Part shown: in pieces, positions 30,939 through 42,999 of the stretch
Layout of the letters: the number at the start of each line of letters is the position of its first letter
Numbering within the stretch: position 1 is the stretch's first letter
DNA from: Oculina patagonica
Taxonomy: Eukaryota
Direction: 5' to 3'
DNA: 64,000 nucleotides
NCBI RefSeq assembly: GCF_052425735.1
Contig: NC_135765.1
Location: forward strand, 1,860,001-1,924,000
Program-made: the position numbers and the translations under genes
The notes under the pieces: model-generated
What the model saw: only the letters and a program-made list of their open reading frames with translations
Told to the model about the DNA's origin: nothing
Database searches by the model: none

Positions 30939-31327
30939 TTTGAATGTGAAAATTCCTTCAAGATTTCAAGGATGAGATCGTAACTGAACGCGATGCTGTC
31001 CTATATACGCGTAGATATCTGTGTAGAGGACTGAAACTATGTTTGTGTTAGTCCTGCACAGTCTTTCCACAATCTTTTTAGTGAAAATTTATAAATTTCT
31101 GCTCCATCAAAGTTGTTGTGGAAACGGCGAAAACAACCTGCGCCAGCGATGTGAAGAACGTCTCTCAGCGGATGCGCTGGACTGAAAACTCCCGGATGTT
31201 AGAACCCAGTGTCTTGCTGACCAAGGACGCCTTGCTGAACACGAACACGTGAAAGTGAAAAACATCTTTGGTCATCTCTCTTTGAGGGGATCTTTTAGTT
31301 GAAAGAAAACTCAGATATCTAAAAAAA
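30939..31327. promoter_or_regulatory. Bidirectional promoter CCDC39 / NOL7-like, with X-box and E-box
   Basis: ATGs are about 390 bp apart head-to-head. GTTTCCACAACAAC (minus, 31112-31125) fits the RFX X-box; CACGTG lies at 31246-31251. Confidence 0.65.
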
Positions 31328-32110
31328 ATGAGAAAGAAAACTAAAGGAAGAAAACTTAAACCGAATTCAAGTCAGAATAAGGGAAAACTAACAGATCAGA
31401 GCACCGAATCTACCGTGGAAAGTGAGGTTCAAGTGCAGGCGCAGAAATCAAGTGGTGCCGGCGGAGAAGATCTTATAAAGGATGAAAATGAGCACGTTAT
31501 TGCTGTGATAGATAAGAGCCCAGCTAAGGGTAAAACCAGTGAAGAGAGTAATACAGAGGTTGATGATGACGGTGACGATGCTCCAGAGGACGTTTCTTGG
31601 AAGTCTAGCAAAGAAAGTGCAATTCGAGAACGGACACTCGAGAAAGAAATCGCTCTTGATGCTAAACGAAAAGAAAAGCAAACCAGAATAGAGAGAAATG
31701 AAAGATTACGAGAGCAGAAGGAAAGAAAAAGAGCGAGAGAATACTCTAGACTACCAATGGAGGTTCTCCAGGAGGTTGCTAAGCGACAAAAGTCCCAGAA
31801 TAATGAAGACGTCTTATCACAGTCAGTTGACACTGGAAATCACGTGACATTTGACAGTTCAAGCGAAGATGATCAAGACGAAAAAGAAGAGGGACCAGAA
31901 GTCAATGACGAAACACCAGAAATCAAAGTTCTTGTTTTACCGAGGGAAGTGAAGAAGCCTAAGAAAATCCAACAATCTGCAAGTTTGTTTTTACGAGAGC
32001 AATTGTTTGGTGATAGGATTCAGCGCATTTCACCATCAAAGGACTCAGATCGCACAAGAAAATATAAAACAATAGCTCCTGCACTTAAGTTTTCCAAAAA
32101 ATCATGGTAG
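31328..32110 (+). CDS. NOL7: Nucleolar protein 7-like (NUC129/Utp16 family), single coding exon, 260 aa
   Basis: DDAPEDVSW followed by a charged coiled coil, ..REQKERKR..RLPMEVL, and C-terminal QQSASLFLREQLFG..IQR..PALKF. This parallels the recalled NOL7 motif order. Confidence 0.75.
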   Translation: MRKKTKGRKLKPNSSQNKGKLTDQSTESTVESEVQVQAQKSSGAGGEDLIKDENEHVIAVIDKSPAKGKTSEESNTEVDDDGDDAPEDVSWKSSKESAIRERTLEKEIALDAKRKEKQTRIERNERLREQKERKRAREYSRLPMEVLQEVAKRQKSQNNEDVLSQSVDTGNHVTFDSSSEDDQDEKEEGPEVNDETPEIKVLVLPREVKKPKKIQQSASLFLREQLFGDRIQRISPSKDSDRTRKYKTIAPALKFSKKSW

Positions 32111-33412: not shown

Positions 33413-36400
33413 ATGGTGAGCTTCGGCAATATTTTGTCTTGATACAAAATCGGGGAAGTCTTTCCTCTTGGAGTTTTGTCACACGATATGAAACAGCGGT
33501 TTAATTTTGTTGTTTTATTTCAGTTTCAGTTTATGCTGCTCTTTAGCCGTCAAGGCAAACTTAGACTACAGAAATGGTACACCGCTTCGAGTCAAAAGGA
33601 GAAGAAGAAAATTACCCGTGATCTGATCACCACTGTTCTTGCTAGGAAACCGAAAATGTGCAGCTTTCTTGAGTACAAGGACATGAAGGTTGTTTATAAA
33701 AGGTAAATATAGGTAGCAGTTATCTTTATATTTGAGAAAATAAAAGCTGGAACCTGTACACTATTGAATTTATAGATGATGCGGCATCATAATGATTATT
33801 AAATTGGGGAAACAACTTTGTCGACAGATGGCCGTCAGTAGTTCTATAAGATATTGTTATAAATTCTCTAGCAATACTTTGTTCAAATGCCGATCAACGC
33901 TATTGCTGAGTTAAACAAGGGAATGTTGCTGTGATGGGAAGTGTCTAGTCGGTTTTTCGTGCATTTTGTATTAAATACCAGCAGGAACATTGATTCAGGC
34001 TATATTTGGAAAACTGCAACACTTCCCGGCCAATATAATGCATCCTCCAAAGTTTATCTCACAATCCTCCCTGGCTATATGATTATCAGAAGGAATTTTA
34101 CTGAACCAGTCAGTTATATTTGTACCATACTAATGCACACGTCAATGTTAAGCTGCAGGAGGGGGAGGCTGGGCATAGGAAGGAATGGTCAAAAAGTCAT
34201 GGCTACAGCCAGACAGTTGCTGTCAAATCCCATGCTATGCTCAGCCTCCCCCCCCCCTGCAGCCTAACACTGAGAGGTGCATAACATTTAACATTTCTTT
34301 TTTTAATTTCTAAGATATGCAAGTTTGTATTTCTGTGTGGCAATAGAAAAAGATGACAATGAGCTTCTTACTCTGGAAATAATCCACAGATATGTTGAAC
34401 TTCTTGACAAGTATTTTGGAAGTGTAAGTATAAAACACCAATTTCTGTTCGAGGTGACAAAAACATTTTCTCACTGTTTTGTATTTTGCCGCAATGCTTT
34501 CAATTGGCACTGATGGGTGACAAGAAGTGTCAGCTACTTTGCACTGCTTTAAGGCTGCAAATTATTATTTTTTGCTGAAAGGACATATGTCAGACTAAGT
34601 CACCATTTTGATTGGACAAAACAAAAATGTGGTTGAACAGGGCTTTACATTGAAATTTATTTTTGATTCAAAATTGTCACAAGAGAATTGTCACCTGGAA
34701 AATGATATTAATGGTCATTTATGATTTATTCAGCCTGACATGTTGTCGGACTACGGTTGGGATTTTAACGGACATAAGCAAATTTTGGTCGGCCATTGTC
34801 CAATGACCGACTGTTATTTGTAGTCCTGCTACTTTGCTCAGAGAAGTCGGCTTCTTTTCCCCCTAAACTAAAGAAATTAAAGAAAGATTCTTTCAAACAG
34901 TCAGATACTCTTTTCAAACCAGCTGCCTACTTGGCATAATAATTTTTGTACATATTTATTTTCTGATAGGTATGTGAGCTAGACATCATTTTTAATTTTG
35001 AGAAGGCATATTTTATGCTGGATGAACTGATACTCGGTGGAGAGATTCAAGAAACAAGCAAGAAAAATGTTCTGAAGGCAATTTCAGCTCAAGATCTCCT
35101 TCAGGAGGTATGTGAATCCTTACTTCATGTTCATATTACGCCACTGTCATTATCTGTTGAGTATGGCTTGAGGGAGGCGTGGTGGACTAATGGTTAGCGC
35201 GCATGACTCTGGGTCGAATGGCCAAGGTTCGAGTCCTGGCTGGGCACTGCGTTGTGGTCTTGGGCAAGACACTTTACTCTCACAGTGCCTCTCTTCACCC
35301 AGGTGTATAAATGGGTACCAACGAATTTACCTGCTGAAGGTAACCCTGCGATGGACTAGCATCCCATCCAGGGGGGAGTAGCAATACTCCTAGTCGCTTA
35401 ATGCTACAAAAAGTGGGATAAGCTCTGGCTGTATGGGCCACTTGGCTTGGACACAGACTTTACCTACCGGTATGGCTTGAGGGAAGTTGTGTCACAAAGC
35501 ACCCAGGCTCCTGTCATTCTTATATGGATCAAAACGCCCCGACAAAAGGCTATTGCTCAAAACCTCAGCTTTTCAAAATTTGTTACAGTGGTTATTTTAC
35601 CTTAATCCCCTTCAAGAGTTCATAAACTATGTGACTCCTAAAATAATACTCGCAACTTCGTTTTTAAAACACTTATAACTGTGATAAATGTGTGACAAAT
35701 TTTGTGGCGACTTGTTTAGTGAAACACTTGTAAATTTAACTTTAACTAACTAACTTACTTCCAGGTAATAAACATATACACGCGTCTAATATTTCAATAC
35801 TTAAAATAATTTTAAAAAGGCTTCTAAATATATATTGTAATCGTTTAACAACTTTAAAATCTGTCATCATACATATCATGGCCAGAACTTGTGAGCTACT
35901 CTCACTGTTGCCTCCCTTTTCACATTCTGTTTTTAAAATTCATGCACCACATAACACGTTTTCTCTTTGCATTTCCTATTGATGCATTCTCTATTCACAG
36001 CCACACACAAATCTTTACACACGTTCATTACAGTTACGATAAAAATTCTCCTTTCTGGTCTACGTTCATTTTTAACAGAATCAGTTAGGAGAAATTGGGT
36101 GTTGGTGTTCTTTCCTATTGATGTACACATTCACATACAACCCTTTACACCTTAATGAAAACATGATGCATATTTATCCTTCCTGGTCCCAAACATTTCT
36201 CACAGCACCAGATAGGAAAGTTTCTAAGGCATTTGTGTCATGTTATCTTCACTAGTGAGAGGCATACTTTTGTCTGTCTGTCCATCACTGCTAATGATTT
36301 CTGCTGATCACACTCCAGAACCAAGATGCAGTGGGGGTACTGGTCGTGAAGGGACTGTGTCACGGCTAAGTTAATTATTTTTATGTTATTAAATTTTGTC

Positions 36401-36942
36401 AAATATGCGCTATGAAACTAAATGTTTGCAAAGAAATTAATTCTATGATTCTAAATGACAAAACCATAGCTTCATTGTCTCCCCGGCATTTCAATTTATA
36501 GTCACAAGCAGACATGTTTAACTTTGAAAGTTGTTCCGCCAAACCATATTTCAAAAACCCATATCGCAATCCGTATCAAACTTCAACACTTTTGGCCATC
36601 CGTACCTTCTTTTGCATTTGGTGTGTCATTTAAATATCCCTCACTGTTTTAAGAGGTTGTTTTGTATATTCAACAAATTTGATGGTCATTTCCTATGCCT
36701 TAGTTTGGCTAAAATCTGTGACACAGTCCCTATAAAACCAATATATAACTTCTCCTTACTCACCACCATACCTTTCATATAATACCAGTAGTGAGAATTG
36801 TTTTCACATCTACATCTACTCACTCTGCTGTTATCTATGCTAACTAATCCTCTCCTCTGAGCTGCCTCTTTGCCTTCCTTTCATGCTTTTTCCACAGGAA
36901 GCAGAGCTGCGAAGTGCTTTGGAGGAGATGGGTCTTGCCTGA
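33413..36942 (+). CDS. AP1S2: AP-1 complex subunit sigma (AP1S1/2/3 co-orthologue), 157 aa with the first EEMGLA exon
   Basis: Exons 33413-33415 (ATG), 33524-33702 ([19 protein letters not shown]), 34315-34423 ([26 protein letters not shown]), 34970-35107 ([25 protein letters not shown]) and 36898-36942 ([14 protein letters not shown]). Confidence 0.96.
35172..35469 (+). mobile_element. Full-length tRNA-derived SINE with a CORE/MIR-like central domain
   Basis: A box GTGGACTAATGG, B box GGTTCGAGTCC and core CTTGGGCAAGACACTTTACTCTC..TGTATAAATGGGTAC. Direct repeat GTATGGCTTGAGGGA at 35161-35175 and 35470-35484. A degraded copy lies at about 47575-47820. Confidence 0.9.
36350..36731. mobile_element. 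Kolobok-like non-autonomous element in the last AP1S intron
   Basis: AGGGACTGTGTCAC...GTGACACAGTCCCT inverted termini. Confidence 0.8.
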
Positions 36943-36988
36943 ATTCTTTCATCTGTAAATCTCTACTTCTGATCCTTTTGTTCTACAG

Positions 36989-37033
36989 GAAGGCGAGCTC
37001 CAGCGCACGCTGGAAGAAATGGGTTTGGCCTGA
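36989..37033 (+). CDS. AP-1 sigma alternative terminal exon (EGELQRTLEEMGLA*)
   Basis: Has its own branch-like CTGAT, pyrimidine tract and TTCTACAG acceptor. It is phase 0 and paralogous to 36898-36942. Confidence 0.8.
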   Translation, partial: EGELQRTLEEMGLA

Positions 37034-37088
37034 ACTGTCTCCTCTTCTCCTTCTTCAACATCTTGTCCTAACATCTTCACTTCTACAG

Positions 37089-37136
37089 ACCAAGATGATG
37101 AACTTTTCACAACGGGATGCTCTGTATCATATCTAA
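37089..37136 (+). CDS. AP-1 sigma candidate third terminal exon (TKMMNFSQRDALYHI*)
   Basis: CCTAAC branch site, pyrimidine tract and TTCTACAG acceptor. Exon size and spacing are similar to the preceding two. AATAAA follows at about 37209. Confidence 0.5.
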   Translation, partial: TKMMNFSQRDALYHI

Positions 37137-39469
37137 AAGCGAGATTCTGTTGAAATGGCCTAAAACTTAGCCTGTTATATGCACTATTAGTTTCAGTCTG
37201 TAGTTTGGAATAAAATCACAAAATGCAACATTCTTTGCCCAGGCTGCAGTGTTAGCGCCTCTGTAGATCTAATCTGGAGGTCTTGGGTTCAGATTCCATC
37301 GGAGATCACTTCCAAGGGATGTTGATCAATGTGATCAACATAGACAAAAGGATCGCATAGGCTGTCCTCAATAAATCCACAGACTGAAATTAACAGTGTT
37401 TAGGCCATTTTCACAGAAGTCTGTTTCTTAAATAACTGTCTTGAATTGTTTAAGTATACTTGATTAAAAACAGGTATTCGTATATATAAGTTGAAGTGTG
37501 GGTTTCTTTTGTGGAAAATTGAAAAGGACAGAACTTTGAACTGGAAATTAATTACCAGTAGGTATCTTGCAAATCAAATTTCTGTATACTGGAAAAATTA
37601 TGTAGTTTTCAAATCTTATAAATATTATATAGAATAATAGTACCAGGTATATTTCTATGAAGGCAGCAATCCTTTGCACTTATTGTTTGTTCTGTGACTT
37701 TTTGTTATGTTTCAAATTTCTTTTTTGTGGTAAGTCAACTCTCGCCTTGCGGACACCCCGCTTTGCTGCCCCGGGTACCCTAACGCCCCCGCGGGCCACT
37801 ACATATAATGTATTTTTCTTTTTTTTACTGCAACGTGCTAACAGTTTTGAAGACATTTTTTAACTGGTGTTTGGTAAAATGTAACAAAAAAAAAACATAA
37901 CAAATAGCTTTTTCAGTTTAAGAGTGCTTATCATGCCTAATGTTTTTTTAAATAAAAAATTAAAATGTAAACTATAAATTCGAACTCTATTTTATAGATT
38001 CCATATCCCATATTATAGTTTGTAAATAATCAATAATTAAATATTAATGTAATTAATAACTACTAATATATTTCTCTTTTAATTTTAATCCTTACTTGAA
38101 TCGCCCCTTTGATATTGTAGCCAAATTATGTTATTAAAGTAAAAAATTTAGCTTGTTTTGAACGGTAAAACGCAGCCTGCGTAGCAAGCGTTCTCGTACG
38201 AATGAAGATTAGACCTGATTGGCTGGGAAGAGAACATGTTTGTTCTGATTGGTTGGACCAAAATGCACGAGTATTTTGAACCAATAACAAAGCTTGGGAA
38301 CACAAAAAGGAAACATGTAACAATGCTTGAAACAAAAAGCAACTAGAGTGCTGTACTTCATACGGTTTTGTTTGTTTGACAGGAAGGGGAACTGCAGCGT
38401 ACACTGGAGGAAATGGGGCTGTCATAATTACAAGTTGCATGATGAAGGGAAGGGAGAACTTTATAATGGAATTAGAATCTTCTGTAGTTAATTTCCAAAT
38501 CCACTTTTTGTGACATTTTATACTCTTGTTCGTCTGGGTTTAGCTGTTTCTGATCAGACGTTAGTGCCACTCAAAGCACAAGGAACTCGTGAAAAGGTGT
38601 TTCCCTGTTGCTCAGAAAAGAATACTTCTCTTAAACCGCATGCCGTTCTGGTTTTCTTTTTTTACCTCCCTTTTTCACTTGTTCCTTGCCACCCGAGATA
38701 AATTCTCAATGCACAGTTAGCGAATTGAAAATAAGTGGCATTCGGTTATCCGTAAAAAGCATTTAAAGGTAAACATGGTTTGTCACCTTCGTCTTTGTTT
38801 GATTCAAGATAGATTTAATGCCAAATGTGAAAATGAGAACTTTGTAAAGCTGTAGTATACTATTAAAGTAAAACGAAATAGATATTTTGTCTCAGTTACT
38901 GTATTCAGTGTGTGTACATGCACGTACAGCGTATGTAAAGGATCGATGAAGCAATGACGTCCTTCATGCATCCCGCTTTGTAAGTTCTAGCCCCACAGTA
39001 TCATAATGACGTTTCATTTTCTACCTTCCGAGGCGGCCTAGCCACAGCCCATGCTGGTTCGTGATTTACTCACCATCCCCAATAACCTGAAACCTGAAAC
39101 CTCAAGCGTCCAAGCAATCACAAAGGTAGCCGGTACCAGGTTTCGGTTAGTTGGGTCGTAGCGCGAAGGACGGCGAGTGGAAAAAAAAAATGAAGAAAAT
39201 AATGAATTGGGGCTTCTTCGCCCCATTTATTTCACTTTCCGGTATTCGCGCTTTTCTCCAACTAACCGAACGCCTGGTGCATGCTTTCGCAGAAGTAGCG
39301 AGTCACTACAATCGCTTATTAGTGTAGTAAACAATCGAATCAGAACTCAAAGTTAACATGTGCAACCAGTGGCAAACGCAGGACAAGTCACTTAATCAAA
39401 CGGTTTGTTTTGCATTGCGACTATTTTCAGAGACCTATTGTTAGTTATTTATCGTGTCTAAATAAAAGA

Positions 39470-39471
<2 letters not shown>

Positions 39472-39543
<72 letters not shown>
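39472..39543. repeat. (ATT)n microsatellite
   Basis: Perfect trinucleotide run. Confidence 0.98.
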
Positions 39544-41274: not shown

Positions 41275-42999
41275 TTAGCGTTTTTTCTTGCCTTTTTTCT
41301 TTGCCTGACTTTGTGAATCGTCTGTTTTATGACTTTTGTCCAAATTAAGAGCATGTCCAAGTTCTTTTATGTGTTGGAACATTCTGTTTCTTGTGGGAAA
41401 CGAAGCTTGGCAGACATTACACTTGAATGTGTTAGCTACTGGCTCCTTGCTCGCTGCTGACGATTTCTTATTTCTTTCTGCGGATTTTTTGTTCTCATTA
41501 TCAGCGTCAGCAGACTGCATATCGCTGCTAGATTCTTGTAATTCCATGTTTTCTTTATCGTGTTCCTTCTGGTTTTCAATATCAGTTGTCGCACTGTTTA
41601 CGTGCGGTGAAGTTGGTTTATCACCTCCGTCGCCGGTGTATTTGTCACTTTGTTCATTGACAGTGCTTTCCTCATCGCCATCGCTATCTTCACTTTCATT
41701 CCTCTCCGCGTCTTCATCTTCGTCTCCTCCTTCTAATTCTCCTTCTCCAATTCCTGATAAAGCTCTTGGCTTCCTCTCGTGTAACACCTTTATCTTGTAC
41801 CGATTGTTGCCCTTGATTCTCATGGTGGACAGCTCCACAGAGTCCATCAGATTTAATTCTCCAACACTCACAAAATCCGTGCCATTCTCCTCCACACTGT
41901 ACTGTCTCTTATTCAGATATTCCTTCTCTAGCCCGCCGTCATTCAATCCATCCAAATCATTTTCCACATTGTTCGATGCATGGCCGTCCACTTGTTCTTG
42001 CTCAGCCATTTCTTGTTTGATAGCGGCGACTTTGTCCTTGTGTTTTCTCGACTTCTCGTGATTTACTAGCGCCTTCTCTGTTTTGAAAGCTTTATCACAC
42101 GCTACACAATAATAATGTTCGACCTCCTCGTCATCTGATTGGCTGTCGGCGACGTCATTGTCTCTGCCGAATTCACTGTCCAAATGCGTGTCCATTTGGG
42201 CCAAGTCCTCCTCAAGCCCGGACAAAGTGACCCAGCTCTCCTCTTTATACTCATCAAACATCTTCTCGCGTTTCTGCAAAGCTTCCAGTCGCTTCTGCTC
42301 AGTTAATCGCTTTCTTTCTTCATCTTTCTCCTTCAGTAGCTCTAGGTATGCTTTGACACGCTTGTCTCTTTTGCGGACGAACTTCACCAAAGCGCGTACT
42401 TCTTCATTTCTTTCCTTTTTGGCGGCATCTCGGATTTTCTTGTTGTCTTTTTCCATCAGTCGCTGGACTCTGCGATTAGGCGCCTCTTTGAGGTTGTATT
42501 TCTCCAACCAAACGTAGGATTTTTGGGTCGAGTAGCTTTGCCAGTGAGCATAGAAAGGTTGTACCACCTCTTCATAATCGTTCGAAGATGTTCCAAACTC
42601 GGGTACTTCCAGATCTTTAGCAGTTGCAAATTCAGCGTCTTCTTGAGCTATTATTTTAAACACATTGGAATAAACCGCATAAAAACCGTCCTCGTCGTCG
42701 CCGTATCCACAATAAACAGTTGCACTGAAGTACTTCATCAAATTCACGCTATTGTCGACATAATCATCGCCTCCCCTGATGATTTGTTCGCGATGTTTAT
42801 CATACCATGCTCGCTCTTGCGGATCGATGAGAACTTCATAAGCTTGCTGGATCTCTGTGAAGATCCGGGTGCTCTCTTCATTGTTGTCTTGGTTTTTATC
42901 CGGGTGCCATTTTAACGCAAGCTTCCTGTAGGATTTCTTTATCTCATCGTCGCTTGCATCTCTTTCGACCCCCAATACTTCATAACAACAGCGCGGCAT
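41275..42999 (-). CDS. DNAJC21: DnaJ homolog subfamily C member 21 (Jjj1-like 60S maturation co-chaperone), single exon, 574 aa
   Basis: N-terminal J domain with the HPD motif, [25 protein letters not shown] segment, and two C2H2 fingers ([14 protein letters not shown]; [17 protein letters not shown]). Confidence 0.96.

Follow-up and report, generated by a model that had tools for sequence, protein, structure and literature searches.

How many alternative C termini does a single coral gene for the small (sigma) chain of the AP-1 clathrin adaptor encode, and where in the DNA do they lie? The question was raised by a 64,000-nucleotide stretch of Oculina patagonica (contig NC_135765.1, positions 1,860,001 to 1,924,000 of the forward strand; hereafter the window, with positions counted from its first letter). 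An earlier note had described three short cassettes in it, here called C1, C2 and C3, as an array of alternative last exons ahead of one AATAAA. Our analysis makes it highly probable that the window holds a single sigma1 gene with three homologous, ancient, tandem-duplicated terminal coding exons giving alternative 14-residue tails. These exons are C1, C2 and a further copy, C4, which is homologous to both and lies outside the interval flagged at first, 1.35 kb further downstream; C3 is not supported as one of them.

The part of the gene that precedes the tails was delimited as follows.

33413-33415, plus strand: start codon at the end of exon 1, read from the sequence and followed directly by a GTGAGC donor at 33416
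33524-33702, plus strand: AP-1 sigma coding exon 2, with boundaries taken from the sequence (Pfam Clat_adaptor_s, E = 1.3e-19)
34315-34423, plus strand: AP-1 sigma coding exon 3 (Pfam Clat_adaptor_s, E = 6.8e-13)
34970-35107, plus strand: AP-1 sigma coding exon 4 (Pfam, E = 1.3e-14), matching residues 98-143 of sigma1A in the PDB

The start codon yields M followed by FQFMLLFS, matching the 157-residue coral RefSeq proteins. Along the 142 positions of the PF01217 profile, exons 2, 3 and 4 covered 2-61, 61-96 and 98-140, respectively; exon 4 is the end of the sigma fold, and its phase-0 donor (GT at 35108) is common to all tail exons. The nearest PDB relatives were AP-1 sigma1A and sigma3, far above the sigma chains of AP-2, AP-3 and AP-4 (bit scores of 262.7 for sigma1A, 140.8 for AP-2 sigma and 118.4 for AP-4 sigma), and the ranking obtained with exon 4 concurred. 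The tail aligned to sigma1A residues 144-157, as a C-terminal extension past the sigma fold that ends ...LEEMGL[A/S]; the chains of AP-2 and AP-4 sigma end at 142 and 144 residues, whereas AP-1 sigma adds a tail of ∼14 residues. On these sequence grounds, the gene is identified as a sigma1-type clathrin-adaptor small chain of a scleractinian coral. It is the sole AP-1 sigma gene in the 529-Mb genome, in which the next match to exon 4 has 39% identity.

Three segments of equal length qualified as tail exons.

36898-36942, plus strand: tail exon C1, behind an AG at 36896-97 and reading GAA GCA GAG ... GCC TGA, for a 14-residue tail
36989-37033, plus strand: tail exon C2, behind an AG at 36987-88 and reading GAA GGC GAG ... 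GCC TGA, for the tail EGELQRTLEEMGLA and a stop
38383-38427, plus strand: tail exon C4, behind TTTGTTTGTTTGACAG, for the tail EGELQRTLEEMGLS and a stop; recovered by a motif scan of the whole window, and probably the main terminal exon and one followed by a long 3' untranslated region (UTR)

Each of the three opens with a full codon in phase with the donor at 35107 and has an acceptor that ends in ACAG, and pyrimidines make up 84% (C1), 79% (C2) and 63% (C4) of positions -22 to -4. C1 and C2 form a direct repeat with a spacing of 91 nt and 71% identity over 68 nt; Tandem Repeats Finder called no array in this stretch, the copies being too diverged outside the 45-nt exons. What the earlier note had read from the letters themselves proved accurate, namely the frames, stops and ACAG acceptors of C1 to C3 and the AATAAA at 37209-37214; with the phase-0 donor at 35107, all three would be read in frame.

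Orthologous loci were compared in Pocillopora (L005 and L009), Stylophora (L008), Desmophyllum (L006) and the sea anemone Nematostella (L007), with no Oculina locus in the set; the 'complex'-clade corals Acropora and Montipora were compared by their proteins only. A single contig look-up with the exact protein gave only short Logan contigs that lack the tail exons. All five loci possess three tail exons, in the same order and behind the same exon 4. The spacing from C1 to C2 is 85-92 nt in the corals and 184 nt in Nematostella, and the third tail exon follows further on, by 1.1-1.35 kb in the corals and by 261 nt in Nematostella. The frame, the 45-nt length and the stop of C1 and C2 are kept from Nematostella to the corals, and the presence of both exons in four other coral genomes shows that the C1-C2 repeat is more than chance. 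Tandem exon duplication, predating the divergence of corals and sea anemones, is the most probable origin of the three segments, and purifying selection has kept all of them since.

The copies within the window were compared pairwise, and Fisher's test was applied to Nei-Gojobori counts of sites. Between C2 and C4 there are 11 differences in 45 nt, in nine synonymous codons and one non-synonymous codon (p = 2.2e-7); between C1 and C2 there are 14 in 45 nt (five synonymous and four non-synonymous codons, p = 3.9e-5), and between C1 and C4 there are 15 in 45 nt (six and five, p = 3.9e-5). Over the 40 nt flanking the exons on each side, similarity is no higher than the pyrimidine-rich background, and this divergence of the flanks indicates that the duplications are old. 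Gene conversion is, to judge from these patterns, not the cause of the similarity between the copies, and all three appear to have been read as protein. Between coral orthologues the differences in the tail exons are almost all synonymous, and the C2 peptide is the same in this coral and Nematostella despite 15 differences in 45 nt. We conclude from the substitutions that C1, C2 and C4 are kept under protein-level purifying selection. The earlier note had proposed such selection for C1 and C2, and for these two it was borne out, both by the mostly synonymous substitutions and by the annotation of both as alternative tails in related corals.

The conservation extends beyond the exons. Ordinary intron sequence does not align between corals, whereas the block 36844-37137 aligns at ∼84%, and the C1-C2 block plus its intronic flanks is ∼90% conserved between corals. 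C1 itself is identical at 42 of 45 nt to both Pocillopora and Desmophyllum, and C2 at 42 of 45 nt to Pocillopora and 44 of 45 nt to Desmophyllum. The segments around them are the following.

36850-36897, plus strand: CU-rich tract and C1 acceptor, 43 of 48 nt identical to Pocillopora and to Desmophyllum, with ∼35% just upstream
36943-36988, plus strand: spacer that is also the C2 pyrimidine tract and acceptor, 43 of 47 nt identical to Pocillopora
37034-37088, plus strand: non-coding CU-rich tract past C2, 42 of 55 nt identical to Pocillopora and 50 of 55 nt to Desmophyllum, a possible splicing-regulatory or UTR element

Intron flanks that are as conserved as the exons they surround are typical of regulated alternative exons. 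The CU richness of the C1-C2 flanks suggests a control of the type exerted by polypyrimidine tract-binding protein (PTB). The same flank conservation, together with the lack of junction reads in the RNA described below, would fit C1 and C2 being untranslated RNA elements, that is, splice-site decoys or elements of regulation of the nonsense-mediated decay type. We regard this explanation as scarcely credible: constraint on RNA does not predict substitutions that are overwhelmingly synonymous, both between paralogues and between species, nor a frame, length and stop that persist from the anemone to the corals, and RefSeq models translate both exons.

C3 fared differently from C1 and C2.

37089-37136, plus strand: cassette C3, behind an AG at 37087-88 and reading ACC AAG ATG ... 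ATC TAA, for TKMMNFSQRDALYHI and a stop; not supported as an exon

Under the arrangement first proposed, a single terminal exon, polyadenylated past the AATAAA at 37209, would use all of C1, C2 and C3 as alternative coding ends, with C3 supplying a third, unrelated tail. In its favor, the acceptor of C3, CTTCACTTCTACAG, is good and is also present in Desmophyllum, the frame of C3 stays open for 15 codons, and the region is conserved as DNA. The comparisons weigh heavily on the other side. In the three pocilloporid genomes (two of Pocillopora and one of Stylophora) the acceptor reads CCACGA, so that the AG is lost, and an 11-nt insertion follows; in Desmophyllum, the fourth of the other corals, the AG is kept, but the frame behind it is an unrelated peptide of 25 residues. 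In the RNA contigs of two close relatives, 2 nt are missing at 37128, so that the ...YHI end gives way to a longer and different one, and no protein joining exon 4 to the C3 peptide was present among the 120 best matches. Because C3 is conserved only as DNA, with insertions and deletions, it behaves as non-coding sequence; a coding role is not supported, and the segment probably belongs to the conserved non-coding stretch that follows C2. The arrangement also leaves out C4, and we consider it very unlikely. The idea of one gene with serial 3' splice sites behind one donor nevertheless survives for the sole sigma1 gene and its C1 and C2, which relatives have annotated, with C3 struck from the series.

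Two other candidates were rejected. The reading of C1 as an internal cassette, with a GTAAAT donor at 36955 past its stop, was discarded on finding that motif deleted in Desmophyllum. Candidate extra tail exons in 35740-36042 (N[IL]YTR) lacked both a conserved block in the comparison with Pocillopora and any matching tail among the proteins listed; against Desmophyllum this interval gave only fragments of 64-65 nt that abut it, at 78% identity.

Proteins were surveyed with a profile search built on a 98-column alignment, followed by a search limited to the last 60 residues. In most invertebrates, sigma1 is annotated with several isoforms, which diverge exactly past ...DLLQE. One 90%-identity cluster of 27 members holds RefSeq isoforms of Stylophora, Pocillopora, Acropora (four species), Montipora and Oculina that carry the tails of the window, distributed as follows.

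C1 tail: Stylophora X2, A. digitifera X3, Montipora X3 and A. palmata X3
C2 tail, EGELQRTLEEMGLA: Oculina X2, Acropora and Montipora X2
C2 variant ending ...GLV: Pocillopora
C4 tail, EGELQRTLEEMGLS: Stylophora X1, Acropora, Montipora X1 and A. palmata X1

A Desmophyllum protein has a near-identical tail of the C1 type, and Nematostella, Actinia and Exaiptasia have three tails apiece, one of them identical or nearly so to that of C2 (Nematostella X1 carries the C2 tail). The RefSeq protein X2 of O. patagonica is 100% identical to the product of the window, including a 12-residue N-terminal extension (33488-33523) that starts at an in-frame ATG at 33488 within intron 1. The three-tail feature is thus already known from the public annotation of related corals and sea anemones, and probably of this very species. 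To this the present analysis adds the origin by exon duplication, the age before the coral/anemone split, the selection test, the rejection of C3 and the placement of the third member at 38383.

RNA reads were examined over 34900-37600, a stretch that ends short of C4, and largely as assembled contigs, which drop rare forms. Two contig runs were clearly RNA, with contigs of depth 210 (run X1) and 141 (run X6) that start and stop exactly at exon 4. In X1, the one run whose contig can show it, the spliced contig (depth 210) continues for 660 nt beyond exon 4 with sequence found nowhere in 34900-37600; since it leaves this stretch past exon 4, the main mRNA lacks C1, C2 and C3. C4 with its 3' UTR is most likely the destination of this mRNA.

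Several points nonetheless weigh against the use of all three exons. The assignment of the major mRNA to C4 is indirect, as C4 lies outside 34900-37600. Over that same stretch, the contigs of this genome's RNA, which drop rare forms, showed no junction that links 35107 with a tail exon. The raw single-end poly(A) runs X23 and X24 gave almost no depth on the gene and none over the cassettes, their depth being on intronic repeats only. From 36717 to 37600 there were only unspliced contigs, at a depth of 11-17, which is 5-12% of the exon depth and ∼3 times that of the earlier intron; such coverage could come from a retained intron or from minor C1/C2 mRNAs that extend as far as a distal poly(A) site, and contigs cannot tell these two sources apart. 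Finally, the coral RefSeq isoforms are automatic models. Our confidence in the three-exon gene is high.

The end of the supposed array was also reconsidered.

37209-37214, plus strand: AATAAA that may serve C1/C2 mRNAs as a proximal polyadenylation signal

The position of this motif is not conserved (+176 here, +624 in Pocillopora and +492 in Desmophyllum), and a contig of run X6 crosses it and extends ∼730 nt past 37591. With the third true member located 1.35 kb downstream, a closed set of three cassettes before one AATAAA is not supported.

The description of the tail as diversified was right in part: C1 differs from C2 and C4, whereas C2 and C4 differ at the last residue alone. This near identity, which is found in all five corals (A or V in C2 and S in C4), speaks for a further explanation, by which C1 and C2 would be kept mainly to switch the 3' UTR and the fate of the mRNA, from a short proximal UTR to one of ∼0.5-1 kb after C4, with the tail merely preserved. 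Conservation of ∼45-55 nt past each stop also agrees with it. Arguing the other way, 4-5 of the 14 residues of C1 are unlike those of C2 and C4, a difference that is itself conserved, the A versus S at the last residue is consistent across corals, and the position of the proximal poly(A) signal is not conserved. We consider a UTR switch as the main reason rather unlikely, and distinctly more plausible than either a coding C3 or untranslated elements; for the pair C2 and C4, which differ only at that residue, which 3' UTR is chosen may be as important as which protein is made.

In the preferred explanation, three duplicated tail exons in one gene, the donor of exon 4 would be joined to any one of three 45-nt terminal segments, each with its own pyrimidine tract, CAG and stop. 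The choice of 3' splice site would set the 14-residue C-terminal tail and, at the same time, the 3' UTR of the mRNA. As each copy has its own stop, the choice of acceptor fixes the tail, and no special mechanism of exclusivity is needed. In bulk coral RNA, C4 would probably be the default, with C1 and C2 as minor or regulated forms, flanked by unusually conserved CU-rich intron. By analogy with mammalian sigma1A and sigma1B, the role of the coral tail is likely the tuning of accessory-protein binding by AP-1.

Other features of the region are recorded here. A single-exon gene for a 574-residue protein with DnaJ, zuotin-homology and zf-C2H2_jaz domains (DNAJC21-like) occupies 41275-42999 on the minus strand as the downstream neighbor. 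The same DnaJ/ZUO1-like/zf-jaz neighbor lies on the opposite strand downstream of AP-1 sigma in Pocillopora, Stylophora, Desmophyllum and Nematostella, and its presence at both the coral and the Nematostella loci indicates an old microsynteny. Directly upstream of AP-1 sigma, a K/E/S-rich open frame of 274 codons (31286-32107, plus strand) is probably an exon of a neighboring gene. At the start of exon 2, tandem acceptors 6 nt apart (tttcag|tttcag, 33518-33529) could add or drop two residues (FQ). The last intron contains an interspersed repeat at 35173-35470, where the RNA-contig depth reached ∼28,600 versus 210 for the exon; it has a box-B-like motif, GGTTCGAGTCC, and resembles a short interspersed nuclear element, yet ARAGORN called no tRNA in it. 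A second high-copy repeat (36349-36720, contig depth 1,000-4,700) directly precedes the C1 block and breaks RNA contigs at ∼36705-36717. Past the C4 stop, ∼45 nt (38428-38475; ACAAGTTGCATG.TGAAGGGAAGGGAGAAC) are kept in three corals, unlike the remaining UTR, and may form a UTR element. Distal polyadenylation signals lie at ∼38862 and 39461; the second, an AATAAA, is directly followed by a long (ATT)n microsatellite (39475-39543), close to where the AP-1 sigma 3' UTR probably has its distal end.

The closest known counterparts are the hexacoral RefSeq entries named AP-1 complex subunit sigma-2-like (Stylophora pistillata X1 and X2, Acropora digitifera X1-X4, Montipora capricornis X1-X3, O. patagonica X2 and Nematostella vectensis X1-X3), which share the tails (the anemones in part), the exon order, the phase and the 157-residue protein. 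They differ in that pocilloporid C2 ends in V rather than A, and in that the anemones have diverged first and third tails (EGELRTALEEMGLS and QLELQQTLEELGLS) and a tighter spacing (184 and 261 nt). Tandem-duplicated mutually exclusive exons are homologous, equal in length and phase, and used one per mRNA; the coral exons depart from the general case because each copy has its own stop and the first acceptor used ends the frame. In vertebrates, AP1S1, AP1S2 and AP1S3 (sigma1A, sigma1B and sigma1C) vary in the same C-terminal segment past ...DLLQE, but there the variation is spread over three paralogous genes, whereas the coral has one gene with duplicated terminal exons. Mammalian sigma1A and sigma1B were reported to differ both in the C-terminal helical region and in their binding partners (PMC4944158), and Ap1s2 3'-end isoforms with coding changes were described in mouse brain (bioRxiv 10.1101/2025.05.02.651907).

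Ptychodera, Amphiura, Priapulus, oysters and Gigantopelta, compared as proteins only, likewise have one gene with isoforms that diverge exactly past ...DLLQE. Their tails belong to other families (...SVLEEIGLT, ...NALEEMGFL, ...ETPQGFFEDHGLG and ...ALKEQGLY). Tails of the forms ...SVLEE[IL]GLT and ...NALEE[ML]GFL occur in a hemichordate and a brittle star, and ...ETPQGFFEDHGLG occurs in a priapulid and a gastropod. The recurrence of tail families across phyla hints that alternative tails may already have existed in early bilaterians. Searches of the literature yielded no paper that deals with the sigma1 tail exons of invertebrates. A broader proposal is that duplicated sigma1 tail exons were an ancestral animal device for making distinct AP-1 complexes, that the vertebrate sigma1A, sigma1B and sigma1C tails are descendants fixed in paralogues, and that the coral CU-rich flanks are PTB-type silencers restricting C1 and C2 to certain cell types, such as neurons or secretory cells; we offer it tentatively, as possible and still doubtful.

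Because the public RefSeq models of related corals already show three isoforms, current understanding is unchanged. For annotation, the terminal exon set of the gene includes 38383-38427, C1 and C2 are alternative coding ends, and C3 is not to be annotated. For the biology of AP-1, the retention of three tail versions since before the coral/anemone split, in an animal with a single sigma1 gene, argues for an isoform-specific function of the tail.

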